A DNA stretch of 64,000 nucleotides from Octopus sinensis (taxonomy: Eukaryota). Below the pieces are notes generated by a model. The model did not search any database and was not told the origin of the DNA. It worked only from the letters and a program-made list of their open reading frames with translations. A program made the position numbers and the translations under genes. Shown here piece by piece: positions 3,645 through 62,166 of this stretch (position 1 is its first letter; every line of letters starts with the position of its first letter). The stretch covers positions 49,600,001 to 49,664,000 of the forward strand of contig NC_043010.1 of NCBI RefSeq assembly GCF_006345805.1, written 5' to 3'.

Positions 3645-4070
3645 GCAAATGCAGAGTACCAAAAGCACAAGTTCCACTGAGTTGGAAATGTCACAAGGTT
3701 CACAGACAGCAGGTGAACTGGTGCAGATGCTAAGTGGTATCCAAGAGACCAGAAAAAACCACTTGGAAGGCTGCCATGATGATGGGAAGATGATTTAGTC
3801 AAGCAGTTTGGGTCAAGATGGAAGAGAATGATGCAATCAAAACAAAATTGGAAGTGCATTGTGACAAGCAGTGTAAAATAGCACCTAATGGCCTGGTCAA
3901 TAGTGTGATATATGATGAGTTTTTTTCAGTTTCTATCTACCAAATTCATTCACAAGGCTTTGGTTGGTCTGAGGCTATAGTAGGCAACACTTGCTCAAGG
4001 TGTAATGCCATAGGACTGAACCAAAAAACATGTGGTTGGGGAGCAAATCTCTTACCATATTGCCACATTT
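3364..4070 (-). mobile_element. Family A SINE split by an inserted LINE fragment
   Basis: 3' half at ~3364-3640 and 5' half at ~3915-4070 both match family A. Confidence 0.7.
3645..3895 (+). mobile_element. RTE-1-like LINE 3' fragment nested in a SINE microsatellite
   Basis: Joining frames gives ...KRPEK/PLGRLP*RWEDDLVKQFGSRWKRM, resembling the RTE C-terminal KRPxGRPxxRWxDD motif. Confidence 0.6.
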
Positions 4071-7070: not shown

Positions 7071-7099
7071 ATTTTTTTTACCAGTGCTGCCTTGAGTGG

Positions 7100-7350
7100 C
7101 TTCCGTGCCGGTGGCACGTAAAAAGCACCAACCGATTGTGGCCGTTACCAGCCTCGCCTGGCACCTGTGCCAGTGGAACGTAAAAAGCACCCACTACACT
7201 CATGGAGTGGTTGGTGTTAGGAAGGGCATCCAGCTGTAGAAACACTGCCAGATCAGACTGGAGCCTGGTGCAGCCTCCTGACTTCCCAGCCCCCGGTCGA
7301 ACCGTCCAACCTATGCTAGCATGAAAAACGGATGTTAAATGATGATGATG
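7100..7350 (+). mobile_element. Family B RTE-tail element
   Basis: ggcacctgtgccagtggaacgtaaaaagcacccactacac...gaagggcatccagctgtagaaac...gttaaatgatgatgatg. Confidence 0.75.
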
Positions 7351-7933
7351 GTAGAAGGCATCTATGGAACTTCCATGCTGGTAATGACTAAAAACCAAAT
7401 GCAATTCCTCCCCACCTCCAGTTGAAGACCCCAGCAGCAGCACAAACAGGGAAGGGCAACACCAGACAGACTAGCTGAGAAGGTGCCAATGTAGACTATA
7501 ACTGACACAGCAGCAGGTCAAACAATTTTAATACCTGACTCTGTCTGGTTCTACATATATTGCTGAGCCTGGTCATGAAACCATAGCTTGTGGGTTACTC
7601 TTTATCAAGTTAAGAGTTATTGTAAACAAATTCATGCCATTAGCATTTTCTCTTGCTGATAGTTTGTTCAACAGTATTTGTATTTTATATGCAGAGATTT
7701 CTGCTGGAGTATTTTTGCTCATCCATATTGTTGATATTCATAACTAGCCTCACAAAATTTCCTCTGTTTCTATGAACATATATTGATCACTTTTAGTTTT
7801 GCCTACTGGGGAGAATATGTTTCACTGAGGAGGTCAAATATGACTGCAACATTTCTGTCACTGTCATCAGTCAGTTTAAATGTCAAATTTAACCCCCACT
7901 TCTGCAGTCATCTTTCTTAGTTTTAGGTTTTAA

Positions 7934-8153
7934 CCCTTTAGCATTCAGATTAATCTGTCTGCTGTAATGCTTATTTATCCACATGGTTTCAAATTGATCA
8001 TACTTTATCTTGTAGCTTTGTGATTTCAATGATGTAATTATTTATGTTTAGAATGACATTGTAGTGTAGGTGTGAGAGGCCAGATCTGACCAGTGTGAAC
8101 ATAAAATAGGTCAAATATGTGTGCCAGCTATGGCCTGTTTGAATGCTAAATTG
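7934..8153 (+). mobile_element. piggyBac-type MITE family 1 (TTAA target site)
   Basis: TTAA|CCCTTTAGCATTC ... GAATGCTAAATTG|TTAA, 220 bp. Related copies at ~24568-24766, 36333-36550, 44582-44802 and 45622-45838. Confidence 0.8.
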
Positions 8154-9378
8154 TTAAACACCTCAGAAGGAATTTTTGATCACTGTTTGTATGGATAATG
8201 TCAGTTAATCTAAAGTTTTCGACTTAGAATATTGTGTATAAGACACCCTACCATATTTGATTTTAATGCAGATATTCTGTCTGTTTTTTCTCTTTCTCAT
8301 TGAGCCTTTTCTCCCTTACCCTTTACTGTAGAGTGTTACTATTTGACAAGTTTAATTCTCTCTGAATATTTATAATTATCAATTAGGTTAGGAGGGAAAA
8401 TAAGTTTTCATTCACAAGATATTTGGTTTTGTTTCTTCTCATTTACTGAATGGTGGGGGGAAACCCCATTCACTTGCCTTTAGATACTTAAGAAATAATA
8501 AGTAGGGTGAACTCATGAATATCTCCATAGAATTGATATAAATGATGAAATGCTGAAAACATTAGAGTTTGTTCATTTTAGATAGATGGCTTTAATGTGC
8601 AATATTTTGCAGGAATTATTTGAACAGCAGCTTTACAACTGGATGATTTACTTGATATAAACTATTCCATTTTGAAATACCATATCTGATCTTAAATTTA
8701 TAGACAAAGCAAACAGTGCATTATGCTTTGCTTAGAGAAAGAATGCTATGTATGCTTGTGCCAGAATTCCATTTCTTGTTGCTTTGGTTTAATAGCCTCA
8801 ACACATAGTATTCAGTTGCTATACTTTGTATAACCAATCTTATAATAGAGGGTATTGCCTCTAGGCAGAAATGCAGTTTGAATAAATAGACTTCACATTT
8901 AAACTCGTCACACTTATCAGGCAGCTGATCAATAGAACATTGGAGGAGCATTTCTTGTAGCAAAATGGATAGAGAAATAGCCTTGGTATAAAAATTTCAG
9001 TGTGTGCTGATATATAGATGCATTTACATTTTGATGCATTCCATTTCCTGCTCTGTCTATAGGCAAATTATCTCATAGAGACATAGGAGTTGAACTATTG
9101 ATTAATTATGTTTTGTGATATCTATTTGTAAGAAACTTTAAATTTATCTGCCAAAAGCCTCATGACCTAAGCTGATTCATTCATTTCTAATCCAGACAGT
9201 TGCTTGTTAACACTTCTGTATTTTCTTTAATGAAAGAAAATTTCTTGTGACTATAGTATTATAGTATGATAGTGTGGCAGAAATATTCCCAAAAAAATTC
9301 TATATAGTAATTGCATCTTGCTTTAATTTTTGCCAATTAATTATCAGTGAGGTATAGGAATTAAATATTGATTACAAA

Positions 9379-10115: not shown

Positions 10116-10536
10116 TTAATTTTGAGGTCAATATTGAGGCATTATTCAAGGGATTACTTTCTTTTTTTGCTTGCAATTTTAAGATTTTGGTCGTAACAAT
10201 TTTCTCTATTTAAATTTTACGTTTAAATTATGTTTCAGGTTAATGATCTGCTGTAAAAAAACCCCAAAAAATATATATATATTCAAAATGAAATTACTTA
10301 GATTTTTGACAGTTGAGGAAATTGCCTTTTTTTGTCTTTCTTTATAGCGTTATTCTTTTAATTCTGCTCTTTTGATTTAAATTGAATTGTCATTTTGAAT
10401 GTGATGATATCACTGAACTATTGGTGTCTGTCACTATTTCTAATTTAACAATAATTCTTTTCCATACTATTTACTCTACCTCCATCTTTTCCTTCATTTT
10501 CTGTCTTCTTTACTGAAAAGTAGATGCTAAAATGCT

Positions 10537-10540
<4 letters not shown>

Positions 10541-10577
<37 letters not shown>

Positions 10578-11080
10578 ATATATATATGTATATATATATG
10601 TATGTATGTATATGTTTATATGTATATATATATATGTATGTATGTATATGTTTATATGTATATATATATATGTATGTATGTATATGTTTATATGTATATA
10701 TATATATGTATGTATGTATATGTTTATATGTATATATATATATATATGTATGTATGTATATGTTTATATGTATATGTTTGTATATATATATATATATGTA
10801 TGTATATGTATGTATATATATATATATATGTATATGTGTGTGTATGTTTGCATATATGTGTGTGTATATGTATGTTTGTATGTATATGTTTGTATATATA
10901 TGTTTGTATATATATATGTATCTATATTTATGTATATACATACATATATATATATATATTGTATATATGTGTGTATATGTATGTATGTATGTATGTGTGT
11001 GTGTGTTTATATATATTTATAGATACATACTTATACGCACATATTTATATATTAATATATACATGCACACACACACACAC
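10541..11080. repeat. Compound (TA)/(TATG)/(CA) microsatellite with a 36-bp higher-order unit
   Basis: GTTTATA recurs at 10614, 10650, 10686, 10722 and 10762. This tract is the source of the spurious 133-209 aa Y/I/M/C/V ORFs. Confidence 0.95.
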
Positions 11081-11454
11081 ATTTTTGTTCGTGTATCTAT
11101 TACTTAATATGAGCAAAAATTCTTGTCAATCTATTCTTTTGATTTTGTTATGAAATTGGTATTTTTGTATGAGAATGTGGAGTAAAAGTATAGGACTGCC
11201 AGCAGTAATAGGAAGTTGACAGAAAGAAATATATAGATATAATTCAAACTGTTCCATGTACTTAAGATACTTTTGCATGAATAAGCAGTTATTTTTTTGG
11301 ATAGAATTCTGCAGAATTGGCATTATAAATAAATTTTTTGTGAACATGCCCAAAATAGATCAGAGTTTGTTGAAGGAAGTTTACAGAAGAAATAACCCTA
11401 ACTATACCTCTAGTTTTTATTATTATTATTATTATTGTGCTGGCAGAACCATAA

Positions 11455-14324: not shown

Positions 14325-14540
14325 TCATCATCATTTAGTGTCCGCTTTCCATGCTAGCATGGGTTGGACAATTGTATATATATGTTTATGTGTGTGTGTG
14401 TGTGTGTATATATATATCCAGCCGTAGAAACACTGCCAGATCAGACTGGGCCTGATGCAGCCTTCTGGCTTCACAGACCCCAGTTGAACCGTCCAACCCA
14501 TGCTAGCATGGAAAGCGGACACTAAGTGATGATGATGATG
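14325..14540. mobile_element. Two family B tail fragments in inverted orientation
   Basis: 14325-14369 and 14491-14535 are near-perfect reverse complements of each other. Confidence 0.85.
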
Positions 14541-19914: not shown

Positions 19915-20532
19915 CTTTTACTTGTTTCAGTCTGTGGTCATGTCGTGCTTGAGCACTGTCTTGAAGGATTTAGTCAAACAAATTAATCATAGTATTTTTT
20001 TTCCTTTTAACCCATATATGCCCATTAAAAAATGAAGTGTTAAAATTTCACTGTATTTAGATTAAACGTTACGATAAGCTTTCACAATCTGGAAGAGAAG
20101 GACAGTATGCAACTATTAGTGATAGGTGTCGACTACCCACTGAACATTTTGTATGCTCATGTTCAAACAAGTAGGAGCTGATTTTGCGTTATGAAAATGC
20201 AACCAGGGGTATATATGGGTTAAGTTTGGTACTTATTCTATTGGGCACTTTTGCCAAACTGCTAAGTTATTGGGATGTAGACAAATTAACACTGGATGTC
20301 ACATGGTGCAGGCGGGAACATAACAAACACAAAGGCGCACAAAATCATTTATACGTATACACACACACAGATATATACCTGATGGGCTTCCGCACAGTTT
20401 CCATCTACCAAATTCACTCACAAGGTTGGCTCAGGGCTATAGTAGAAGACACTTGCCCAAGGTGCCACGCAGAGGGACTGAACCTGAAAACATGTGGTTG
20501 GTAAGCAAGCTACTTACTACACAGCCACTCCT
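19915..20532 (-). mobile_element. Family A SINE interrupted by a TTAA MITE
   Basis: Family A sequence lies on both sides of 20011-20219. The 5' head ends at cacagccactcct. Confidence 0.8.
20011..20219. mobile_element. piggyBac-type MITE family 3
   Basis: TTAA|CCCATATATGCCC ... GGGGTATATATGGG|TTAA, 209 bp. Confidence 0.85.
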
Positions 20533-23688: not shown

Positions 23689-24567
23689 GCATGTACTATT
23701 CACTGGTAACCACATACTAAGACAAAATCTGACGCTACTTATAAAAGAAGACAGTGATTGATAAGTCACTAATGTTGCAATTAACCATCTAGCTGACTAA
23801 AATATATATGAAATTAAATATTAAACTTATTTTTTTTCTAAAATGATCAACAGTGTAATTTGTTAGTGATTGATTGTTGTGTATAACATTCAGTGAGAAA
23901 AACAAATATTATATTGTTTTTGTGTGTTTGTGCTTGTTTATGTATGTTTGACTATCCATCATTTAAGATCAAGACATAATATGTTGCTTACAATTCTTTT
24001 CCATTTTTTCCTTTTGAGTATATATGAAATTATGTGAAAATATTTTGCAAAATTTAGGACAAAATTTACAGTGTCATTTTGATCAAAATACCTGTTACTC
24101 AGGCTTTTGCAAAACCTTTCATCACAGCTCACTTTAATTATAATTCCTTCACTTTTCCTCACCTACACTTAACATCTCTAGCTGCTACTCACTCCCTCTT
24201 TATATGTTGTTTTAGTCTCCTACTAACGTGAATACAAACAAAGACATGTTTTATTATATGTAATATATATATATATTATGTGTCTCATTTAATTTTAAGA
24301 ATAATCAAGAATTTTAAGTGATTAAGTAAAATAATTTTTCGCTATTAATCGTTTAGCATGTACTATTCACTGGTAACCACATACTAAGACAAAATCTGAC
24401 ACTACTTATAAAAGAAGACAGTGATTGAAAAGTCACTGATGTTTCAATTAGCCACCTAACTGACTAAAATATATATGAAATTAAATATTAAACTTATTTT
24501 TTTCTAAAATGATCAACAGTGTAATTTGTTAGTGATTGATTGTTGTGAGAAAAACAAATATTATATA
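23689..24567 (+). repeat. Direct repeat of ~210-225 bp (23689-23913 and 24356-24567)
   Basis: Both copies begin gcatgtactattcactggtaaccacatactaagacaaaatctgac and remain highly similar to the end. Confidence 0.9.
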
Positions 24568-26656
24568 TCAGACCAAAATTGTCTATTGGTTTTATGTTCA
24601 AACTGGTCAGATCTGATCTCTTATACTTATCCTATGATATTATTCTAAAAATAAACAGTCATGTCATTAAAATTTCAAAGCTTCAAGATAATGCATGACT
24701 AATTCAAATTGATGTGAATAAATAAGCATTATGCTTGACAGAGTAATCTGAATGCTAAATGATTGAGTCAGGGTTTGAAACAACCTCATCAAAGTTCTAA
24801 TTTTGAATTATGGTGGAAGGATTTAAAATAGAGCCAAACACATTAACATTGGCAATTTTATATCTTAGAACCAGAGGCTGTCTCAGGCAGATTGCTGTAT
24901 AAAGTGTTATCAATAGAAGTTAATTAGCCCTAGAACTAACCTGATTTAGCAAACCTAAGAGAAAAGGTTTTCTTGCAGTGGGTATCCTGCCTTTTGCATT
25001 AACATAGTGGACCCAAGACCACATTATTCAATATGTCCTTTTTTTCAAAGACAGTTAGGTATTATTTGAAGGAAATTTGGCTGTTGTAGCAAGTTGAGAG
25101 ACAATGTACCTATTCAATGTGATCATTCAGTTTGCTGAAGATAACAGCCAAATGTGCTCTAATTGTTGGTTTGACTAGAAGAAATGTTTAATAATCTCAC
25201 CTGTAATGTAACAGAATCCTGTGTCTGGGGTACCCATCTCTAGAGTGATGATGAAGACAACATTTAGGTACAATATTTTCAGAATTTAAGTAAACTTTAA
25301 TATTGTTAACTGTTAATAAAGGTCCAAGGAAACTAATGATACTCTGTAGTTGAAAAATTCATCTCTCTCTCTCTCTCTCTCACATATGAAAGTCTTTGCT
25401 GTAAACATCAGCACCCTGATCTTACATACAAACTTATCCCAAATTTCTAAATACTTTTAGTCTTTATTTCATTAGTATGACTATTTGTCATGTTTATGAC
25501 AATCAAATAAGTCCACAGCAATTAGTTCAAATCTTCAGACACCTGTTGTAATTATGTTTCATGATTCACCAGCATTATCTTAGTGACACACCATAAAACC
25601 TGTTCATTAGTCACCTTAAATAGTCCTGACCACACGCAACCATGCAAAATACATGCACTACCCCATTAGCATAACAATGGTGTCTCAGACTAGATAGATA
25701 CATACTGTGTGCAGATGTTGACCGGATGTGTTTATATATTAATAATAGAATGGAGAGCAAAGCAAGCGACTATCCACAATACTGTAAATATAACACAATT
25801 CACCTGTTTCACAACAGAAATAAGAGTATATTTGATGACAGGTGTCATTCCAGATCTTGATAGAAGTTGTTACTTATAATAGAAAATGTACACATTTTAA
25901 AACCATTAAAAAAAATGTATAGATTATTAACTCTTCTTGTTTATTTTCTTTATGTTTAAGTTAAGTGGAAAACAAACTGTTGAGGCCCTGTGCTCCACAA
26001 GGGGCAAAAAGGATTAAGAGAGAGATAGAAGAGATGTTTAAGTTATATGTTGTTGTTTAGTCCTAACTCTGCCCTATTTGAACAGATCTATGATCAGAGA
26101 CATTCCTGTTATTAATCATTGTTTTTTTCTTTTTTCTTTCTTTTTTTTGTATATTGGGAACTGCACTGCCCAATCTGAACTTTTTCCTTTATTTAAGATG
26201 GTAGTGTGTGATGTGAGGGAGATGTGACTTTTTTTTTTTTCCTCCCCAAAAAGAAAAGCTCAACTTTGTAATTTGTCCCCTCTGTGTTCAGCTCTGTGTG
26301 GCTAATAAAGAAACATAGAGAAACATATTTCTAACAGGCCAAATAACTGCATAGAAGCTTCTTTATCGAATCATCTCTAAGCTATTGTATGTTTGTCTCT
26401 GTAAGCCTGTGTATATGTGAAGGCATTAAAAAATTCCCAATTTACTAATAAAATTATTTGAACTTATACAGGGAAAATAATTTTGAAAAGTTGATGTAAA
26501 ATATATATAAATTACCTTATTTAATGTCTTTCAACATAGTGTATATAACTTTTTAATAGAAATAAATGAAGCTATTTTCAAGAATTTATTTCATTTTTAT
26601 TGTCTAGTCTTTCAAAGTTGATCATGATAATTTATGAAAACTTTTACAAATTTCAG

Positions 26657-26809
26657 ATACTGGTAGAATTTGATGGAATAAGTTGGGACAAACGAGAATG
26701 GATTAAAATCTATGAAATATGTCAGATTTTCCTTGTGGAGTACTCAGTTGTGTTAGTTCCAAGAGAATTTCCAAACAGATCACCATCTCAGATGAAATGG
26801 CCTGCTCTG
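26657..26809 (+). CDS. KDM3: Internal coding exon of a KDM3/JMJD1C-family JmjC histone demethylase (N-terminal module; equivalent to vertebrate coding exon 2)
   Basis: Translates as ILVEFDGISWDKREWIKIYEICQIFLVEYSVVLVPREFPNRSPSQMKWPAL. This matches, from memory, human JMJD1C VYVEFDDLEWDKREWVKVYEDFSTFLVEY...QIQWPAL and KDM3B IFVEFDGCNW...QWPAL. Acceptor tttcag|ATA at 26656/26657, donor CTG|gtaagt at 26809/26810. 153 bp, phase 0-0. Confidence 0.93.
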
Positions 26810-27021
26810 GTAAGTTAATGCCATCACATTTTATTCATAATACTTATAACTAATGCATCATTGTAATTCGGTCATAAACCCAATTATTTTCTTTTTTCAC
26901 TTTCTTGGTACCGTTGTACTTAATTCACTTGAGTGGGGAAAAAGAATGGTAGTCTGAGACAAATTTACAGCAGTTTTGTTGTAAAGGATACTGACCCTTT
27001 AATAATAAATGAAAATAGTTT

Positions 27022-27815
27022 GTAAGGAGAAAAACAATTAGTTTTAAATCTCCAAGTGAGAAATAAGTAGTAACAATGCTACAGAGTAAAGTCTATTTGC
27101 CAACATAACGTGGCAGTCTTGATTAGGATGGTGTTACTACCTGTTTAGCTAGCTGTCAACGCACAACTGCATCCTTATACCTCAAACAAGGGAGCTAATG
27201 TCTCCACTCACCCTTAAACGGTACTTGCAGACCAATGGTTTCTGGGTTATTTCTCTTCATTGGCACAGGATAACCGTTGGCTAAAGATGCCAGCACTAGG
27301 CCTTGCTTGCGGTATAAAGGGACACACAGCTACTGATCTCGTAAGTAGAAAAGCAATTAGTTTTAAATCTCTGAGCAAGAAATAAGTAGTAACAGTACTA
27401 CAGAGTAAAGTCTATTTGCTAACGTAAAGTGGCAGTCCTGGCAAATAGATTTTATTATGTAGTACTGTTACTACTTAATTCTCACTCAGAGATTTAAAAC
27501 TAATTGTTTTTCTCCTTATGAGATCAGTGACTGTGTGTCACTTTAAAACTATATACCTCAAGTGAAGCCTAGTGCTGCCATCTCTAGCCAAGGTTATCCT
27601 GTGCCAATTAAGAGAAATAACCCAGAAACCAACGGACTGCAGGTACCGTTTAAGGTTGAGTGGGGACATTAGCTCCTTTGTTTGAGGTATAAGGATGCAA
27701 TTGTGCATCGATAGCCAGCTGAAAAAGATGTTTTCCTGGAGTTAAAAAAAGGTAGTAACACCATCCTAATATGAACTGCCACTTTATGCTGGCAAATAAA
27801 TGTTACTCTATATAG
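27022..27815. repeat. Fold-back palindrome built from a 319-bp tandem unit
   Basis: Unit starts at 27022 and 27341. From 27438 to ~27815 the sequence is the reverse complement of ~27079-27420. Confidence 0.92.
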
Positions 27816-28423
27816 TTTGTACTTGATTTAAATTGCAATTTGTTCTATGGTTTCATCATGGGTAGAAGAATGGGGTAGTCCATTACCTGGCTAATGAATG
27901 GCCAATGAACTGAGAAACATGTTAGGGTAATCTCCTTTATTTTTTTCTATTAATTAAGAGAATGTCAGGGTCTATTCACATCTATTTAAAGTTCTACAAT
28001 AAAAATCTGAAGGTTAACTACTTCAAATTTACCTTAGATTTTCTAATACACACAGTGTTGTGCGTAAATATTTACTTATTAAACATTAATAGAAATATTA
28101 AATATTAGATCACCTTTTCTATAATTACTAACAAACAAGTCACTGTAAATAATTTTATGAATCTTGGAAAATACTCTTTTCTTTTTGCTCATAAAAAAAA
28201 AAATAATACAGTTATTTTTTTATAACTTCAAATTTTTAATATTTTTTACATTTCCCATATTTTAAAATAATATTTGCTAATCCTTATAAAGCAGATTATC
28301 TAAAGAGTAGTTTACAGTAATGAGAAAATTAACATTTTGTTTTCACTTCTTTGAATTGTGCAATATATATTATTGATTAAAAAAAAAAACCCAAGTATAA
28401 ATATTCAGTTGTGTGTGTGTGTG

Positions 28424-28466
<43 letters not shown>

Positions 28467-28488
<22 letters not shown>

Positions 28489-28518
28489 ACCCATGCTACC
28501 ATGGAAGGTAGACGTTAA

Positions 28519-28552
<34 letters not shown>

Positions 28553-28592
28553 ACCCATGCTACCATGGAAGGTAGACGTTAAATATATATAT
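28467..28592 (+). repeat. Tandem duplication of microsatellite plus an RTE-tail stub
   Basis: (GT)n-acccatgctaccatggaaggtagacgttaaat-(AT)n occurs twice. Confidence 0.85.
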
Positions 28593-30440
28593 ATTAAGAG
28601 ATCAGGAATTAAAACTCCTATTTATTACATTAATAACTTTCTCAAAAGTGTTAGCATTATAAAAGAACTGCAGTGAACCCCATCCTGAAATCAGGTGATA
28701 GATTCAGTTAGTTTGACTCATATGATATTTATCACTGTAACATTAATGTTGTTTTAGCTTCTGGTCAGCCCTGATCAGACAGAGTTATATCCATAAGCGT
28801 TCCTGTTAGCATCATGTCATCTTTTCTCTTCAGTCAGTTTTTCTATATCTAGAACTACATCATTCACTGTATTCTATATTTTAGGTGGTAATTAACTATC
28901 TGCCATCAGGTAGAGTGTGACATGAGGGAGATTTAGTTATTATTTCCAGCTGACTGAGTGAGCAAACTAAGGCTCCTTTAGCTCATTGATTTCTTTCCCA
29001 GCTGCAAGGCTTCATAGATGTTTAAGGGATCAGGAATGAAATTCATGTGATATTCATATGTTTTTCAAGAACATTAACCCAGCTCTAACGATTTAGCACT
29101 CAACACCATATTATTAATAATGTTTTGCTAAGAATATTGAAAGCTATGGAGTTCCTTTGCACATGAGACAGTTTCACTGAATTTATGCAGCCATTGTACT
29201 CCAAACATAAACCGTTCTGATCACAGCTATTGCTTGGAATAGCTTTAATGCTTCTTTGATATAGCTGCCAAGTTGGCATAGTATTCACTAGATGGCTTTT
29301 TATTGCATTTCATTTCAGTATCATTTGATTGATTGATAGAGTTGCAACCTGCAATTAAATCTTCTTTTGCTCTTGATTTTCTCAGTTCAAACAGTGTGCT
29401 TGTGTATGCTTATTCGATAGATTGTTTCCAATTTGTCATGTATAGCTGTGTTAAAAGACAGTTGTTTTTTTTTTTAAGTTAATGTGGTTTGTCTACTTGT
29501 TACAACTACATATATATATTACATATGTATATTTGTGCATCATATTTGAGTGTTCATGCATTATATACACACACATATACATACATATGTTATATACATA
29601 TAAAACATTGTTTTACCTCTGCTTTATCTATGCTGACATGGGTTAGATGAGGCAATATTCTATGGCTGGATGCCATTCCAGTTGTCAACTCTCACTAGTT
29701 TCCATGCCCAACAAACTACTCAACTGTAAAATATGTTATGACATTGTCTTGACTTAGTTTTATGCTAAGCATGTAAACATAATACAAACTAGCTGACCAT
29801 GTTCCATCAATAATGACAGCTAATTGTAGTATTTTATACATAAATAAGGTACAAAATAAGGTACATTATAATCACACATACAAACATTCACGTACTTCCC
29901 TTGTACATGCACACATATATTCGCACAGAGTTGAAATGCTGATTTTTTCCCACCCCTTCTTTTCACTCACTGTCTCTCAGTCAGGGCTATTACTCTCACT
30001 ACCTCTCCTTCACTGAATTACTATTTTTTCTCCGCATCCGGTGTGATGCTGGACAAATATACATATATACAAATATATAAAAACACTACGCTCATTATTA
30101 TATTAGGAGTTGGGGAAACACACACACACATACAGTATTGCCTGTGCATACACACCTTTTATATGCAATATCTTAGATGTTTAGTGACAATGAATGAGCC
30201 TGTCTAACTTGTGTGTTGCAATATCTTTTTTGTTAATCAGCTGAACTGAATAATGTTTTCCATGCCTGTTGAACAAATATTCATTTGGCCTGTTTATGAG
30301 AGTAAAACTTTAATTTTCTTTCTAAACAACAAATAATTGAAGCATTTTCAGATTCATTTGTAATGTGCAGTTTACAAAAAGTAGATAGTTGGATCATGTA
30401 AAAGCATATTTTTAAAGTTTTCTACAAAATTTTCATACTT

Positions 30441-30865
30441 AGGAGTGGCTGTGTGGTAAGTAGCTTGCTTACCGACCACATGGTTCAGGGTTCAGTCCCA
30501 CTACGTGGCACCTTGGGCAAGTGTCTTCTACTATAGCCTCGGGCCAACCAAAGCCTTGTGAGTGGATTTGGTAGACAGAAACTGAAAGAAGCCCGTTGTA
30601 TATATGTATATATATGTATGTGTTTGTGTGTCTGTGTCTGTCCTCCCAACATTGCTTGACAACCGATGCTGGTGTGTTTACGTCTCTGTAACTTAGCGGT
30701 TTGGTAAAAGAGACCGATAGAATAAGTACTAGGCTTACAAAAATAAGTCCTGGGGTCGATTTGCTCGATTAAAGGTGGTGCTCCAGCTTGCTCGATTAAA
30801 GGTGGTGCTCCAGCATGGCCACGGTCAAATGACTGAGACAAGTAAAAAAGAGAAAAAGAGAAAAG
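30441..30865 (+). mobile_element. Well-preserved family A SINE with an internal 27-bp duplication
   Basis: Head aggagtggctgtgtggtaagtagcttgc...ggttcagtccc. ttgctcgattaaaggtggtgctccagc occurs twice near the tail. Confidence 0.88.
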
Positions 30866-34600: not shown

Positions 34601-36332
34601 TGGAAGCTTAAGAACTTCATGCCTAATGAAGAAATCAGTATTATATATTAATGTCTTTACATTCAGTTTCCAGACCAATATTAGTTGAATGCTTTTATGA
34701 ATTCAGAATTGTTGAAACGGATATTTTACAGCTGAATGCTCTTTGTAAAGTTAACTTGGTTGGATATAAAATCTCCAGACATAACCAATATGGTATGGCT
34801 TTTCATTAGTTGGTTGGTATATTGTGTATTTGCTATACAAAGGAAGTAGTATTATTGAAGAGTAAACTGTCTTTTGTGTTTAAATAAGTACAAAGCAATG
34901 ATAACCAGGCAAATTTATTTTCCTTGAAAGTGGATTTACCTATAATTTTGGTCATCAAGTAGCTAAATATGTTCAAGGAACACAATAGCACATATTATTA
35001 TTTATAAAGACCATTTAATCTAAACCACAAGTTGTCTTTTTCCTTTTAAGCAACACTTTTTTTTTAATATCTTTGTGCTCAGAAAATCTTTTAAGTTGGT
35101 ATGGAAATTTCTGAATAAAATATTTAACTGTATGGATTCTTTCCTCTACAGACAAATGTACATTTGACTGTTGTTTTTTTATTTTTTTTATTTTTGGCGG
35201 TTATCTTAGTTCTACAACTAAATACTCACATGTATTTTACTTTTGTCTATTCTATCCCCCCCCCCCTACAAAAAAAAAAGATGGAACTTAGTTATTAAAC
35301 CAGTACAAGGGAGTAAATATCAAAACTAGTGTAATTGTATGAATAACACTGTGTAACATGATTTTTTTTGTCCTTGGAAAGCAATTGTTATTTCCTATTT
35401 GCTTACTTTTAGAAAGTATGAAAAATTGCTAATATTTCCTTCAAACTTTGATTTTGTTGCATTTGTTTAAACCCCAAAGAATCCCTCTCAACACATGGTC
35501 ATGATGCTACACCACTACTCCTGCTCATGTTCAGAGATGCACATATTGTCAGCCACTAAGGGACATGCTCAAGTGCTTACGGTCAACCAACTGAAAAGCA
35601 AATCTGTGATATTGAGCAGAATATTTGCTATAACAATATTTCTGCTTCAGCAACTCAGTGCAAAATCTGAAATGTGATGGAAAATAGGTCAGTTTCAAAA
35701 CATTGATGTCTAGGCCATAAAAGCAAAGTTTGAATGGAATAGAAGTCATTTCCTGTGATTTCTTGAGAGAAGCAAATAAGAAATAACACTTACTAACCAA
35801 AGATAAATAAATGATTTTAATTTTGTTACATACTGTAAAATCAATTTAAATTTGAAAACAAGTGATAATTGTTTTATATTCTGTTGACTAAGATGAGTTA
35901 TATGACTTTCTTAAGTTATGTTAGCGCCAGATTTTAAGATTTGGATTTTTTTTATTAGTAGTGTAACACCTTTCAGTAAAACAATATAGATGTACAAGTG
36001 ACTGTGTCATTACTTGACCTGATAAAACTGCCACCAAATCTCTCTCAAATTACATCCTACCATCTTGGGGTAAAAATGGGAAAATACATTAGATAATGTA
36101 ATGTTGTCATAGATAAATCGTCTGAATATAAGGTGGGATGGTCATGGCCAGAATGCCTTTTATCTTGGGCCTTTTTGGTCAGGACTGACATTAGTGCAAA
36201 CAATAATGCTTGAATATTAAAAAAAATTCTCATTTAGAATAGCATGCTGATTCAAAATAGAATATTGTGTATGAAAGAATGTTTAAATATTTTGTTGTCT
36301 TAGGAAATATGCAAATATATGTTAAGTTTTAA

Positions 36333-36550
36333 CCCTTCAGCAGTTAAACTGGCCATATGCAGCCAAAATATTCTACCTGTTTTATCTTCAAACCAGCTAG
36401 ACCTGGCCTCTCAAACCTACTCTACAACGTCATTTTACAAATTAACGACATCATTAATCTCTCAAAGCTATGATATAGTGCATGATCAATTGAAAACTAT
36501 GTAAATAAATAAGCATTACATTTGACAAAGTAATCTGAATGCTGAATGAC
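36333..36550 (-). mobile_element. piggyBac-type MITE family 1
   Basis: Reverse complement of 7934-8153, with TTAA at 36329-36332. Confidence 0.75.
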
Positions 36551-38410: not shown

Positions 38411-38718
38411 TCTTTTACTTGTTTCAGTCATTAGACTATGGCTATGCTGTGGCACCACCTGGAGGAATTTTTAGTCAAATGAATTACCCCCAGTACTTGT
38501 ATTTTATTAAACCTGGCACTTGTTCTATCGGTCTCTTTTGCTGAACTGCTAAGTTATGGGGATGTAAACACACACACACACAATGGGCTTCTTTCAGTTT
38601 CCATCTACCAAATCCATTCTCAAGGCTTTGGTCAGCCTGTGGCTATAGTAGAAGACACTTGCCCCTGAGCATGGAACCATGTGGTTAGAAAACAAGGTTT
38701 TTTTATCACACAGCCATG
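38411..38718 (-). mobile_element. Family A SINE
   Basis: tcttttacttgtttcagtcattagact...cacacagccatg. Confidence 0.8.
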
Positions 38719-41745: not shown

Positions 41746-43711
41746 ACTTGTACAGGTGAAAAAGTCAGAGTTAATGAAAAATTTAATTTTGAATTAGTAT
41801 TTGTTTTTTTATTAAAAAAAAAAACAACCTCCCATGCACATGTGCAAGTATGTTTTTGGGTTTTTTTTAAATACAATAAATACAAGTCAATTTTCTCAAT
41901 ACCTGTTGTAGTGCAATGGCTATGAGATTAAGTTGTTAAGTGTAACAATCTTATTGTCATGAGTGACAGTTTATCTGACAAGACAAATTCCTCTCCTATT
42001 TTGTTGCTGTTGCTTAATCCCAAGTCAGCTTTGACTGAGCAGATTTATAAACAAAGTGACTAACATGTATATCTCAGACAACCTTATCTTGTGCATCCTT
42101 CCTTTCTTTTTAAGACAGTAAGAAATGGATGCTATTTCAAGCAGACCAGGCTTCCTCATTGGCTTGTCTACTTAGTTGTTAAGTGGTTAGCTGTATGAAA
42201 GATATCTAAGCTGTAAGCAAAACATTGTTTGAATACATAACATCTTATTCATACTAACATCCTACAGATTCTTCTCCATACTGTTAATATAGAAGAACTG
42301 CATGTTTTAGACATCCTCAATCCAAAGTTGCTACTGTCCTCCCTGTGCTAGTAGAGGAAAAATGCATATAGATCATCCCACAGTTAACTTAAGCATGACA
42401 TGACATCAGCTGAAGTATGAAGGATGAAATTTCTATTTGATAATTGTTGCAATAATTTCATCCTTTAACAAGAGGCACTGAGATGTTGGAGACAGGGGGA
42501 AATAAGATTGTAGAATCTATGCTTTTTGTTTCATAAATGAAGCCATTCCAACAGTGAATTTTAACTAAGTTGTGAAATCATTCTTTTGGTGCAGGTAATA
42601 TTTTCTATTACTTGGCACAGACATGGCTGTGTAGTAAAAAGTTTGCTTCCTAACCACATGGTTTTGGGTTCAGTCTCAATGGGTGGAACCTTGGACAAGG
42701 GTCCTCTGCTATAACCCTGAGCTGTGATTTTGGTAGATAGAAACTGAAAATATGTATGTGTGTGTTACTATCTTCTTACCTTGAAATACGTATGTGTGTG
42801 TTACTATCTTCTTACCTTGAATTTATGTGATAGTTGTAAATGAGCGTTACCATCATGCAAGCAGTGTCTTCCGTTTCCAGTCTTCCATGGAATCCTGTCT
42901 GGTCATGAGGAAACACTCTACATGAAACCAGGTGGAGGTGCTATTACAGGAAGTGCATACAGCTATAAAAAAAATCTGCCTCAACAAATCCGGTCCAATT
43001 TATGTGAACATAGAAAAGTGGATGTTAAAATGATGATGATGACTTCAAAGCTTTTATGACAAACCCACAATAATAATAGTTACCGTAGATAATGATTCTA
43101 AATAATTATAATTAAAATAATCTTCAATCATATTTTATGGATGGAATGCTATTTTAATTATAGTAATAACACTGAATTCCTATGCTAAAACACAATACCT
43201 TCAAATTTTTATGAGAAAGGAAATGGAATGCTGTGTTGTTTGTATTTTTCCTCACAGTGTGAGTGTTGTGAGTGAAGTGAGATATTATCATCTAGGAATG
43301 AAAACTGCACCACATTCTTGGCTTCATGTGAGCTTATACTGTGTACTGTCAAAATAGTTAAAATATTGCTAGATGTCATATAGATAAGAAAGAACAACAC
43401 AGCATAAGTTCAATTGTTCATTGTAGAATAAATTTAGTCTGGTACATGATGATGGTTGTCTAATTGTTAGATGAGCATCACCATTGTTTGATAGCTAAGT
43501 CTCAGCTATGCTTGTGTAAGAGTTTTGAGATAAATGTGGCTTGCACAACATCACAATGACTCTCACTAGGAATACCAAAAACCCCAGAGATATGCAAAAT
43601 ATCTGGTTCAGTAGAAAAATAGGTTTTATATATGAGTTAGCCTCCCCTTAGTGGGATGCCTTAACAAAGACCAAGAGTCTCCTCAAGCACACACACACAC
43701 ACACACACACA

Positions 43712-45083
43712 CAGGATTGGACAAGCTAATGGAATTTTTATTATTTAGTACAGAGTTTGTCCACCTTTGGCATCAGTCACAAGAAATTAACTTGTAATGG
43801 TCCTGAGCAGTTCTTGGGGAATTTTGAGGCATTGTTCAATTATAACCTGCTTTAACTCTTTCAGTGACAATGGCTGAGGGAAGCAGCTCCTCACTTGCTG
43901 CTCCAAAATACATGATAAATGTTCAGTTATATTGAGATCCAGTGGTTGTCAGGGACAGTCCAAGTGGTTTACTTCACTTTTATGCTCTTCATACCAATTT
44001 TGGAAAATGGGTGATAAATGATGATGATGATTAGCCATGTGAATTGGAACATTATCATTTTGGAAGATTGTGGTACCATCAGAGAGCAGTGCTTTGCCAT
44101 AGGATGGACATGATTAGCCCAAATGTTTAGGTATTCATTGTGTTGACTCAACTAAAGAGCCAAGAGAATTCCGTCATCACAGAGCCAAACAGTCAGAGAT
44201 AAAGGCTTCTTTATGCTGTCTCCAGGCATAAATTCACCCCAGAGTGGGGAATGATGATTCATCAGAAAAGATGACATTGTTTCATTGAGCAAATGATGAC
44301 TTTTGAAAGTCTAGTCAACATTTTCTCCACTTACCAGTGTTGATGGTTGACAGGGTACCACCTATGGTATCCAGTTTTATGAAACTTGTGATGAATAGTT
44401 TTGATTGACATAAGACAGGCATGGTCATGGTTTAGCTTTGCTGTTGCTTTTGTTACCATAGTTTGATGGCTTTTAGACACAGTGGTTCTGCAGTAAGCTC
44501 CATGAGCTTAGCTTCCCATCCAGAATTATGCTTGCCAGAGCTGGTTTTACTTTGGTTTTGGGGTGCCAGCATGATTTTTAAAGCCTTTAGCATTCAGGTT
44601 TCTTTGACAGATGTATTGCTTATTTATTCACATTGTTTTGAATTAATCATGCATTATGTTGTAGCTTCAAGATTTCAATGGTGTGTTTGTATATTTTTAG
44701 AATGACATTGCAGGGTTGATGTGAGAGGTTGTATCTAGTCAGTTTTAATATAAAACAAGTAGAATTTTTGAGCTGGATATGGCCAGATTAGATGTTAATG
44801 GGTTAAACAATTCAGTAGTTTTAGTTACTGAAGCTCCAGCCATCCACACCCTAGCAATTTGTCCTCTTTGGAAATCACATAGGCTGTGTATTTTAACTTA
44901 TTTAAATATAAATAATATACAAAAAAAATATTTGAAAAAAAAAAACATACTATATACCATGAAGTGCAAGGCAAACATTATACATATGAACTCATATATA
45001 CAGACTAGAAATTTTGAATTTGTCATATTGGCAATAGAAAACATAAATAAATATATCTCATTGCTATTATTTTGTCCATCCCA
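43712..45083 (-). mobile_element. Decayed Tc1-family (DD34E) transposon with a nested MITE
   Basis: Minus-strand pieces in order: DFQRGQIARVWMAGASVTKTTELF, TIHHKFHKTGYH, NNVIFSDESSF, FQNWYEEHKSEVNHLDCP*QPLDLNITE, ILEQQVRSCFPQPLSLKELKQVIIEQCLKIP. Degenerate TIRs caggattggacaagctaatgg and ctattattttgtccatccc. Confidence 0.85.
44582..44802 (+). mobile_element. piggyBac-type MITE family 1 inside the Tc1 ORF
   Basis: TTAA at 44578-81 and 44803-06. It splits the Tc1 N-terminus. Confidence 0.8.
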
Positions 45084-45128: not shown

Positions 45129-45621
45129 ATTTATATATATATATAAACCATAAAGTCAGGTAGTGCAATATGGATTTTTTCCCCATTTGACTTCCATATG
45201 ATTGCAGCCATTTCATAACCTTCATCATATAGTATCATTAATTCCAGTATGCAAAATTACATATATATCTATATATAGTGACTGTTTGCCTGTTGCAGAG
45301 TTTGACCTCTTCTTGCACCTGTAATTGCTCTTTCCTGGCATGAGATCTTAAATGATTTTCGAGCCCTGAAAGGCATTAGAGATCTACTCACAAATACAGC
45401 AGCAATGTCTCATTTTTGCATTGGCTCCATTTTCCACTTGTTTATTTTGATTAATGTTCAAGTGCTGCCTCATTCACCTGTGTGATTGAAAAAAAAAAAG
45501 CTCTCTATGTGCGTGTGTGTGTACATGCATTGTATGTATGTGTGTGTGAATGACTTGCTCACTCTCCCTACATGCACACAAAGAGAGCAGAAATGATAAA
45601 TAATACATATAACTGACTTAA

Positions 45622-45838
45622 CCATTTAGCATTTAAACCAGTCATATCCAGGCCATATATTCTACATGTTTTATGTTCAGACTAGCCAGATCCAGCCTCC
45701 CACATCAGCCTTACACTGTCATTCAAAAATAAACAATCACATCATCAAAATCTCAAAGCTACAAGATAATGCATGCTTAATCCAAAACAATGTGAATAAA
45801 TAAGAACTACATTTCACAGTGACCTGAATGCTAAAGAG
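45622..45838 (-). mobile_element. piggyBac-type MITE family 1
   Basis: Reverse-complement copy, with TTAA at 45618-21. Confidence 0.75.
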
Positions 45839-50164: not shown

Positions 50165-50469
50165 TCTGGCACCTGTGTCGGTGGCACATAAAAAACACCA
50201 TCCGAGCGTGGCCGTCTGGCACCTGTGTAGGTGGCACATAAAAAAACACCATCCGAGCGTGACCGTCTGCCAGCCTCGTCTGGCACCTGTGTCGGTGGCA
50301 CATAAAATCACCCACTACACTCTCGGAGTGGTTGGCGTTAGGAAGGGCATCCAGCTGTAGAAACACTGCCAGATCTGACTGGCCTGGTGCAGACTTCGGG
50401 CTTGCCAGACCCCAGTTGAACCGTCCAACCCATGCTAGCATGGAAAGCGGACGTTAAACGATGATGATG
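50165..50469 (+). mobile_element. Family B RTE-tail element with an internal ~50-60 bp triplication
   Basis: tctggcacctgtgtcggtggcacataaaa occurs three times, followed by the standard tail ending gttaaacgatgatgatga. Confidence 0.85.
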
Positions 50470-51592: not shown

Positions 51593-52100
51593 TAGGCGTA
51601 GGCATGGTTGTGTGGTAAGAAGCTTGCTTCCTGAGCACATAGTTTTTGGTTTGGACCCAGTGTGTGGCATCTTTGGCAAGTGTCTTCTAATATAGAATCA
51701 AGCTCACCAAAGCCTTGTGAATGGATTTGGTTGACGGAAGCTGAAAGAAGCCTGTCATGTGTATGGTAGTATGGTGGTAAGTATCCCTGCCTGTCACGCT
51801 GGAGACTGGGGTTCAATTCCTTGCTGGGGAGGCTCATATTTTTACTGGCATGACCATAGCCTTAGAGCTGAAACATGAAGAAGAGTAAAAGAATGTGTGT
51901 GCGTGTGTTCGTCCCTCACTACTACTTGACCGCCGGTGCTAGTTTGTTTACGTCCCATAACTTAGCGGTTCGGCAAAAGTGACCGATAGAATACGTACCA
52001 GACTTCGAAAAGAAAGTACTGGGGTGGATTCATTCAACTAAAAATTCTTCAAGGCAGTGCTCCAGCACGGCCGCAGTCTAATGACTAAAACAAAAGGAAA
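51593..52100 (+). mobile_element. Family A SINE carrying a tRNA-Asp-headed insert
   Basis: 5' half at 51593-51756 and 3' half at ~51893-52100. Confidence 0.8.
51767..51831 (+). pseudogene. tRNA-Asp(GTC)-derived pseudogene, 5' truncated
   Basis: TAGTATGGTGGTAAGTATCCCTGCCTGTCACGCTGGAGACTGGGGTTCAATTCCTTGCTGGGGAG aligns to metazoan tRNA-Asp from position 8. The 5' acceptor strand is missing, the anticodon stem has a T-T mismatch and the T stem has several wobbles. Confidence 0.85.
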
Positions 52101-54802: not shown

Positions 54803-55232
54803 ATCTATTACTCGGTTCAGTCATTAGACTGAGGCCATGCTGGGGCACCACATTGAAGAATTTTTAGCTGAATGAATTGACCTCAGAACTTTTTTTTTAT
54901 TTTTCAAACCTGGGTCTTGTTCTATCAATGACCTTTGTTGAACCACTGAGTTATGGGGATATAAACACACCAATAATGCTTGTCAAGCAGTGTTGGGGGA
55001 CAAAACACATACAAACACACACACAGATATATGTGTATGTGTGTGTGTGTGTATATATATATAATATATATATATATACACATACATACATACAACAAGC
55101 TTCTCTCAGTTTCCATCTACCAAATCCACTCATAAGGTTTTAGTAGGAGATACTTTCCCAAGGTGCCATGCAGTGGGACTGAACCTGGAACCATGTTGTT
55201 AGGAAGCAAGTTTCTTACCACACAGCCATGTC
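54803..55232 (-). mobile_element. Family A SINE
   Basis: cagtcattagactgaggccatgctggggcacc...ttcttaccacacagccatg. Confidence 0.8.
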
Positions 55233-62049: not shown

Positions 62050-62166
62050 AATTTCAAACCCCTTATTGACAAAGTTGGCATAAGTAACAGCCGCCAGAAG
62101 CCTGTTGAATTCTTTGTTGACAGAGAATTATTGGTTACAGATGAAAAAGAAATCATTAATTACAAG
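62050..62166 (+). CDS. KDM3: Next coding exon of the KDM3/JMJD1C-family gene (equivalent to vertebrate coding exon 3)
   Basis: Translates as NFKPLIDKVGISNSRQKPVEFFVDRELLVTDEKEIINYK. It continues directly from WPAL, like KDM3B [30 protein letters not shown] and JMJD1C TFKPLVERNIPSSVTAVEFLVDKQL. Acceptor ttttttcctattgtgcag|AAT, donor AAG|gtaagc. 117 bp, phase 0-0. Confidence 0.93.

Follow-up and report, generated by a model that had tools for sequence, protein, structure and literature searches.

A fold-back of a non-coding 319-bp repeat unit in a KDM3 intron resembles a one-step Penelope-type insertion

Insertions of Penelope-like elements consist of partial tandems with an adjacent inverted, truncated copy and are flanked by target duplications of 8-10 bp (PMC8557442; PMC3846280). 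They also show a one-sided "tail" of 31-40 bp and palindromes at the inversion junctions, which have been ascribed to self-priming, and the same architecture is seen in sequences mobilised in trans by Penelope-like elements (PMC8557442; PMC3846280). Penelope-like elements are present in Octopus species. Among the foldback elements, Tetris contains ~220-bp tandem repeats within long terminal inverted repeats and has 8-10-bp duplications (PMC4079207). Non-LTR retrozymes are tandem hammerhead-bearing repeats of ~170-400 nt, and a preprint on vertebrates describes them as depleted from introns (10.64898/2026.07.22.740005). With regard to RNA, hyper-editing acts mainly on the dsRNAs formed by inverted repeats, and an exceptionally high density of such loci is reported for Octopus bimaculoides (PMC5625713). 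In mammals, long intronic stems near edited sites boost the efficiency of editing (PMC5654063).

Here we describe a fold-back of ~0.8 kb at positions 27022-27823 of the window, that is, of the whole 64-kb stretch of DNA that was analysed. It lies inside an intron of a KDM3/JMJD1-family gene and consists of about 2.4 copies of a 319-bp unit. We lean towards the explanation that these non-coding copies, in part tandem and in part inverted, entered the KDM3 intron in a single old insertion and have since decayed neutrally. By analogy of architecture, a Penelope-like insertion appears to be the best match, followed by the foldback transposons; we describe the locus as resembling a one-step insertion of the Penelope type and do not assign it to that family.

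The unit (U, 319 bp) was defined as a segment A of 100 nt followed by a segment B of 219 nt. Repeat searches and the alignment of the arms showed 1.3 unit copies in the direct part (27022-27440) and 1.1-1.2 copies in the inverted part (27441-27823), essentially where the first-pass annotation had placed a 319-bp unit, a partial second unit and a reversal. The left arm, on the plus strand, is composed of A1 (27022-27121, unit 1-100), B1 (27122-27340) and the partial second unit A2 (27341-27440), and corresponds to U(1-319) + U(1-100); A1 and A2 form a direct repeat with 88% identity and a spacing of 319 nt. The right arm, on the minus strand, is composed of A3' (27441-27519, unit 1 to ~83), an inverted copy of B designated B2' (27520-27745), and A4' (27746-27823, unit ~48-100), and corresponds to the reverse complement of U(~48-319) + U(1-~83). 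With ~400 and ~383 nt, respectively, containing 1.3 and ~1.15 copies of the unit, the arms make up most of the element and the middle domain is short.

Four collinear inverted blocks with complementarities of 79-90% were detected. B1 matched B2' with a 132-nt core (27144-27275/27592-27723, 89%), and a block of 105 nt (27315-27419/27441-27545, 89%) adjoins the centre. A1 was 90% complementary to 27439-27518 over 80 nt (from 27023 to 27102), and A4' was 79% complementary to 27069-27146 over 78 nt. The last 21 nt of A2 (27420-27440) form the hairpin loop between TCTATTTGC (27411-27419) and GCAAATAGA (27441-27449). The central junction is asymmetric, and the only microhomology shared by A2 and A3' there is the 2-nt TG at 27439-27440. 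When 27065-27418 was aligned globally to the reverse-complemented 27441-27824, 307 matches, 42 mismatches (25 transitions and 17 transversions) and 40 gap columns were obtained, corresponding to 88% identity. Most of the gap columns come from two additional blocks in B2', one of 25 nt (27721-27745) and one of 8 nt (27546-27553), and a 3-nt indel is also among the differences. The structure is near-loopless with diverged arms, as had been noted before.

At the outer ends, the left arm begins with 47 nt (27022-27068) for which no significant mirror partner was found, and the palindrome did not extend significantly past 27022 or 27823, where alignments of the outer flanks were equalled in 76/500 and 228/500 shuffles, respectively. 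A degenerate extension of A4' to ~27848 is possible and was not significant in the shuffle test. The right end given in the first-pass annotation, 27815, has to be moved outwards, since the arm is secure to 27823. The extreme termini of the fold-back are not complementary to each other. Microsatellite blocks aside, it is the sole inverted repeat of such size in the window.

Near-loopless palindromes are a known class of assembly artefact, and tandem or inverted structures of the Penelope type are reported to trouble assemblies (PMC8557442); a mis-join, or a long read that is chimeric and palindromic, was therefore considered as a possible source. A fold-back arising at the level of a read would, however, leave near-identical arms, whereas those observed here are 12% diverged, mostly by substitutions with transitions and transversions at 25:17, and differ in addition by the indels of 25, 8 and 3 nt. 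There are no gaps or runs of N in the region. We find an artefact of this kind scarcely credible.

The age relations among the copies were examined with A1, A2 and A3', which have 81 columns in common, and the phylogeny below refers to these 81 columns only. The identities were 72/81 for A1/A2, 72/81 for A1/A3', and 71/81 for A2/A3'. A1, A2 and A3' had 4, 5 and 5 private changes, respectively, with no shared changes and no site at which all three differed. The identity of the arms (88%) also equals that of the direct repeat (88%). Such an equal divergence, that is, a star, indicates that tandem part and inversion have a common time of origin and that each copy has decayed on its own from then on; judging from the sequence, the two formed in one event. 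Drift since that event amounts to ~6% per copy, or ~12% between pairs. The fold-back is ancient and was formed at one time, and its divergence and indels probably also stabilise the palindrome at the DNA level.

The first-pass annotation had concluded that the structure is not a simple recent mirror copy, on the ground that, at the unit junction, the right arm is closer to unit 1 than to its mirror partner. That conclusion was not borne out, because the positions in question are substitutions private to A2 and the A copies form a perfect star. An internal star test of this kind can distinguish one event followed by neutral decay from a stepwise or selected origin at a single locus with no second genome, and it could be used on other fold-backs obtained from scans.

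The same comparison bears on whether two members of one repeat family were inserted independently and came to adjoin by chance in opposite orientation. Interspersed repeats often occur as inverted pairs in this region, as exemplified by 44585-44806 and 45618-45836 in the same intron (80% identity), and one site (GCCAG versus GCCAA/GCTAA) groups A3' with A4', apart from A1 and A2, as separate insertions would. The equal divergence of A1, A2 and A3', on the other hand, would require simultaneous insertions from identical sources; moreover, just 21 nt lie between the copies, and the candidate target duplication described below flanks the whole structure and not each arm. Two independent insertions thus appear improbable.

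The outer borders carry a candidate target-site duplication of 7-10 bp, ATAGTTTGTA. Its left copy (27015-27024, plus strand) straddles the start of the repeat, and the right copy (27812-27821, plus strand) is a direct match at 10/10 positions, overlapping the outer 12 nt of A4', a sequence that also aligns with the left arm at 9/12 positions. With 30 and 40 nt taken as the border windows, shuffled sequence produced an exact shared 10-mer in 29 of 20000 trials, and control positions elsewhere in the window did so in 48 of 8629 cases (p ~0.002-0.006); a wider gapped alignment of the flanks over ~27 nt was marginal (p ~0.03). Microhomology-based priming can make a border copy partly element-derived, and the right copy of ATAGTTTGTA may likewise derive in part from the element rather than from the target. 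The GC content of the fold-back, 38.8%, lies at the 89th percentile of 800-nt windows in the 64-kb window, and since this is higher than the local background, the composition looks foreign.

These borders are central to the most serious alternative, in which no mobile element took part and a local intron segment was tandem-duplicated and inverted by one template-switching or fold-back repair event. A single complex rearrangement would fit the star phylogeny equally well, no other copy of the unit was found in the window, and an asymmetric junction with a 2-nt TG microhomology and a 21-nt spacer is what template switches leave. A 10-bp border repeat is nevertheless expected of an insertion and not of an inverted duplication in place. 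In addition, direct repeat and inverted arm have outer limits (27022 and unit ~48-63, respectively) that nearly coincide, suggesting a discrete unit, and the GC content is above the local background. We consider a local rearrangement rather unlikely, and infer that a mobile or extrachromosomal repeat was inserted.

The same A-to-B and B-to-A junctions occur in both arms, suggesting that the template that was copied was already periodic, either tandem or circular. For an insertion, we propose that a polymerase or reverse transcriptase would have made more than one round of copying on such a template, tandem or circular, before switching strands. Penelope-like retroelements and their non-autonomous derivatives commonly insert in this manner, whereas foldback transposons possess the structure from the outset. 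The copies would accordingly have come in pre-arranged, as a partial tandem A-B-A joined to a slightly shorter inverted A'-B'-A', the target site would have been duplicated by 7-10 bp on insertion, and all copies would have drifted apart neutrally since then. The pre-insertion (empty) site is predicted to have read ...AAATGAAA-ATAGTTTGTA-CTTGATTT..., which can also be given as ...AAATGAAA ATAGTTTGTA CTTGATTTAAATTG....

Compared with Penelope-like insertions, the 100-nt direct repeats A1 and A2 around B1 correspond to a pseudo-LTR partial tandem, and a shorter inverted copy adjoins the direct arm, here with a spacer of 21 nt and from the same event as indicated by the 4/5/5 star. A palindrome is found at the inversion junction in both cases, and all parts of the present structure are of one age, as predicted by one retrotransposition event. 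The candidate 10-bp repeat, whose right copy overlaps arm-like sequence, can be set beside the published 8-10 bp. One end is longer than the other, which is comparable to the "tail", but the excess is 47-62 nt as against 30-40. There are also clear differences. No hammerhead was found here, whereas the canonical clades carry one in the pseudo-LTR and the Naiads are without it; nor is there any coding sequence for a reverse transcriptase (RT) or GIY-YIG, the whole element being only ~0.8 kb in length.

The foldback transposons (Drosophila FB, Galileo and Tetris) share with this locus the long inverted arms that make up nearly the whole element and the very short middle. Tandem repeats a few hundred bp long (~220 bp in Tetris), comparable to the 319-bp unit, lie within their arms, and these transposons are non-coding with 8-10-bp duplications, as the fold-back is non-coding with the candidate ATAGTTTGTA duplication that overlaps arm-like sequence. 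However, each arm contains only 1.3 subrepeat copies here, and foldback transposons need matching termini. Since the extreme termini of the fold-back are not complementary, a canonical foldback mobilised by a transposase is argued against. As for the retrozymes, the 319-nt unit and its tandem form would fit a small circular template copied in rolling-circle fashion, but retrozymes require a hammerhead, and the hammerhead core CUGANGA...GAAA was absent on either strand. The fallback reading of the first-pass annotation, an unclassified fold-back element, comes close to the explanation that we prefer.

Subsequently, other copies of the unit and matches to known families were sought. No second copy was found in the other 63 kb by blastn with a word size of 9 or by sensitive blastn, which returned only noise at E ~0.5, and a profile made from the two arms gave a best E of 4.5 with nhmmer over the window and revealed no related sequence. 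As no further copy was found in the 64-kb window, a dispersed family is hypothetical. Exact 21-22-mers of the unit had 0 matches in metagenome, prokaryote-genome and viral collections, which was expected and is uninformative on copy number. A six-frame query with the palindrome had no match in the protein collection, the SINE-like positive control likewise had none, and 21/21 ORFs from the window were absent from the collections in exact look-ups. Because the positive control and the ORF look-ups were negative as well, these external negatives say nothing about copy number.

With regard to known families, an Rfam search of the unit at a permissive threshold (E <= 10) returned no family and no ribozyme, the sole scores being trivial, miRNA-like ones at the central hairpin. 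A tRNA search of the fold-back found none, and no frame of the unit matched Pfam, including reverse transcriptase and GIY-YIG. The 319-bp unit is non-coding, of a known kind and of an unclassified family. If it belongs to a family that always inserts as a partial tandem with an inverted copy, the unit would represent a compact, non-autonomous element that inserts in the Penelope manner. A ready-made dsRNA hairpin would then be created whenever a member of such a family inserts, which would help to explain the richness in ADAR substrates of genomes such as that of the octopus.

The exon upstream of the fold-back (26657-26809, plus strand) consists of 153 nt, or 51 codons, in phase 0/0, with the acceptor tttcag and, at 26810, the donor CTG/gtaagt. 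Weak collinear Pfam matches indicated that it extends from the end of DUF7030 into the start of PWWP_KDM3B. A phmmer (HMMER) search through all 1.84 billion representatives yielded 99 homologues, and the full-length homologues of the exon (1411-2572 aa) have the architecture DUF7030-PWWP_KDM3B-Tudor_KDM3B-JmjC. The tblastn match to KDM3 agrees with this assignment. By these homologies, the exon is a genuine KDM3-family exon, as splice sites, Pfam, phmmer and tblastn all support the identification made in the first-pass annotation. A word-indexed protein search with the same 51-aa exon gave no match, where the exhaustive HMMER scan gave the 99 homologues, one of them at 80% identity; negatives from the word-indexed search are unreliable for short eukaryotic ORFs.

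Residues 17-68 of P0004 mapped to 26654-26809 and residues 69-107 to 62050-62166, placing the next KDM3 exon at ~62050-62166 and delimiting an intron of ~35.2 kb (26810-62049, plus strand) with the palindrome inside. On the sense strand of the gene, the repeat starts 212 nt 3' of the donor, at the 5' end of the intron, and the stem starts about 255-260 nt 3' of the donor, close to the ~270 nt estimated previously for the stem, although the repeat itself begins nearer. The closest homologue of the exon, P0001 (80% identical, also at the nucleotide level), is located on the 1978-bp Logan contig L001 (ERR12408771_697274). For this one homologous locus from a distant species, alignment with the KDM3 locus was limited to the exon and the introns were too diverged, so that the insertion cannot be dated from L001. 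The homologous ORF lies at 309-620 of that eukaryotic genomic contig and was called with TGA read as tryptophan.

The A segments open with donor-like GTAAGG or GTAAGT (GTAAGG in A1; 27022-27027 and 27341-27346), and in the right arm, at 27500-27521, the reverse-complemented sequence yields a polypyrimidine tract with an AG behind it. Cryptic splice-site-like motifs were thus carried by the insertion to the vicinity of the real KDM3 donor.

Folding of the RNA of 27000-27840 gave a minimum free energy of -499.5 kcal/mol, whereas dinucleotide-shuffled versions reached -201 +/- 6 (z = -48). If the intron transcript is made, it is predicted to form an imperfect duplex of ~350-380 bp, consistent with the ~350 bp that the first-pass annotation had expected. 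The longest perfect Watson-Crick run was 22 bp and the longest run with G.U allowed was 43 bp. Both strands folded equally (-499.4 kcal/mol for the plus strand and -502.1 for the minus strand). Among the 42 arm mismatches, wobble-preserving transitions numbered 12 on the plus and 13 on the minus strand, the other 17 being transversions. Neither the arm mismatches nor the folding of both strands revealed strand-specific or compensatory constraint on RNA pairing. With no strand bias in G.U changes and equal folding of the two strands, there is no sign of selection on the RNA structure.

Inverted-repeat pairs that are hyper-edited by ADAR are, like this locus, intronic and non-coding and have a long, nearly perfect predicted duplex. 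They differ in that they are two dispersed copies hundreds of nt apart, whereas here a single event gave rise to both arms, and the loop between them is 21 nt long.

A very stable predicted hairpin of ~380 bp at 212 nt from a donor raises the question of co-option, whether as an ADAR-recruiting stem that raises recoding editing of the KDM3 exon, as a tuner of the inclusion of this 153-nt exon, or as an endogenous-siRNA hairpin-RNA locus. Intronic stems do raise nearby editing in mammals (PMC5654063), and skipping of the exon would preserve the reading frame owing to its 0/0 phase. Set against these points, wobble-preserving changes have no strand asymmetry and the strands fold equally, the arms decay at the rate of the direct repeat, and no conservation was seen in the one homologous locus retrieved from a distant species (L001). 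The exon with its proximal intron (26640-27021) is also without excess structure relative to shuffles (z = +0.83). We judge a selected RNA element of any of these types to be very improbable; in the case of an ADAR-recruiting stem, it would be an editing inducer element that arose from one repeat insertion in a lineage whose RNA is heavily recoded.

An ordinary intronic source of dsRNA, rather than a selected regulatory hairpin, is probably what this locus represents. We infer that A-to-I editing of the intronic hairpin would be a promiscuous by-product with no dedicated role in KDM3, and beyond such editing the effect on KDM3 is probably nil. For annotation, the locus would best be masked as a repeat-derived inverted duplication and not entered as a regulatory RNA.

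As a separate candidate, a duplex holding an edited site within the KDM3 exon was considered and rejected, as 26640-27021 folds no better than shuffles.

Several other repeats were observed in the window. An interspersed repeat of ~220 bp, unrelated to the 319-bp unit, is found at 44585-44806, 45618-45836, 7928-8169, 36328-36546 and 24565-24759. The first two copies form the inverted pair mentioned above, lie ~810 nt apart in the same KDM3 intron and constitute a second potential dsRNA site, so that dsRNA-forming repeats are ordinary here. A SINE-like repeat with a core of ~160 bp has at least 10 copies with 68-84% identity and recurrent pseudo-ORFs containing "IYQIHSQGFG"; copies lie at 3908-4066, 30445-30603, 20395-20508, 644-773, 38583-38662, 51613-51749, 55098-55228 and 42614-42750, among others. 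Another family (79-87% identity), with the pseudo-ORF text "SDLAVFLQLDALPN", occurs at 7097-7350, 50217-50469, 14416-14537 and 214-343. Downstream of the fold-back, 28424-28594 consists of a (TA)n tract and, after it, a 64-nt unit that is rich in TA/TG dinucleotides and present in 2.2 copies. Finally, a low-complexity block of ~600 bp of the TA/TG type at 10524-11153 is the source of long spurious ORFs and of spurious inverted repeats.
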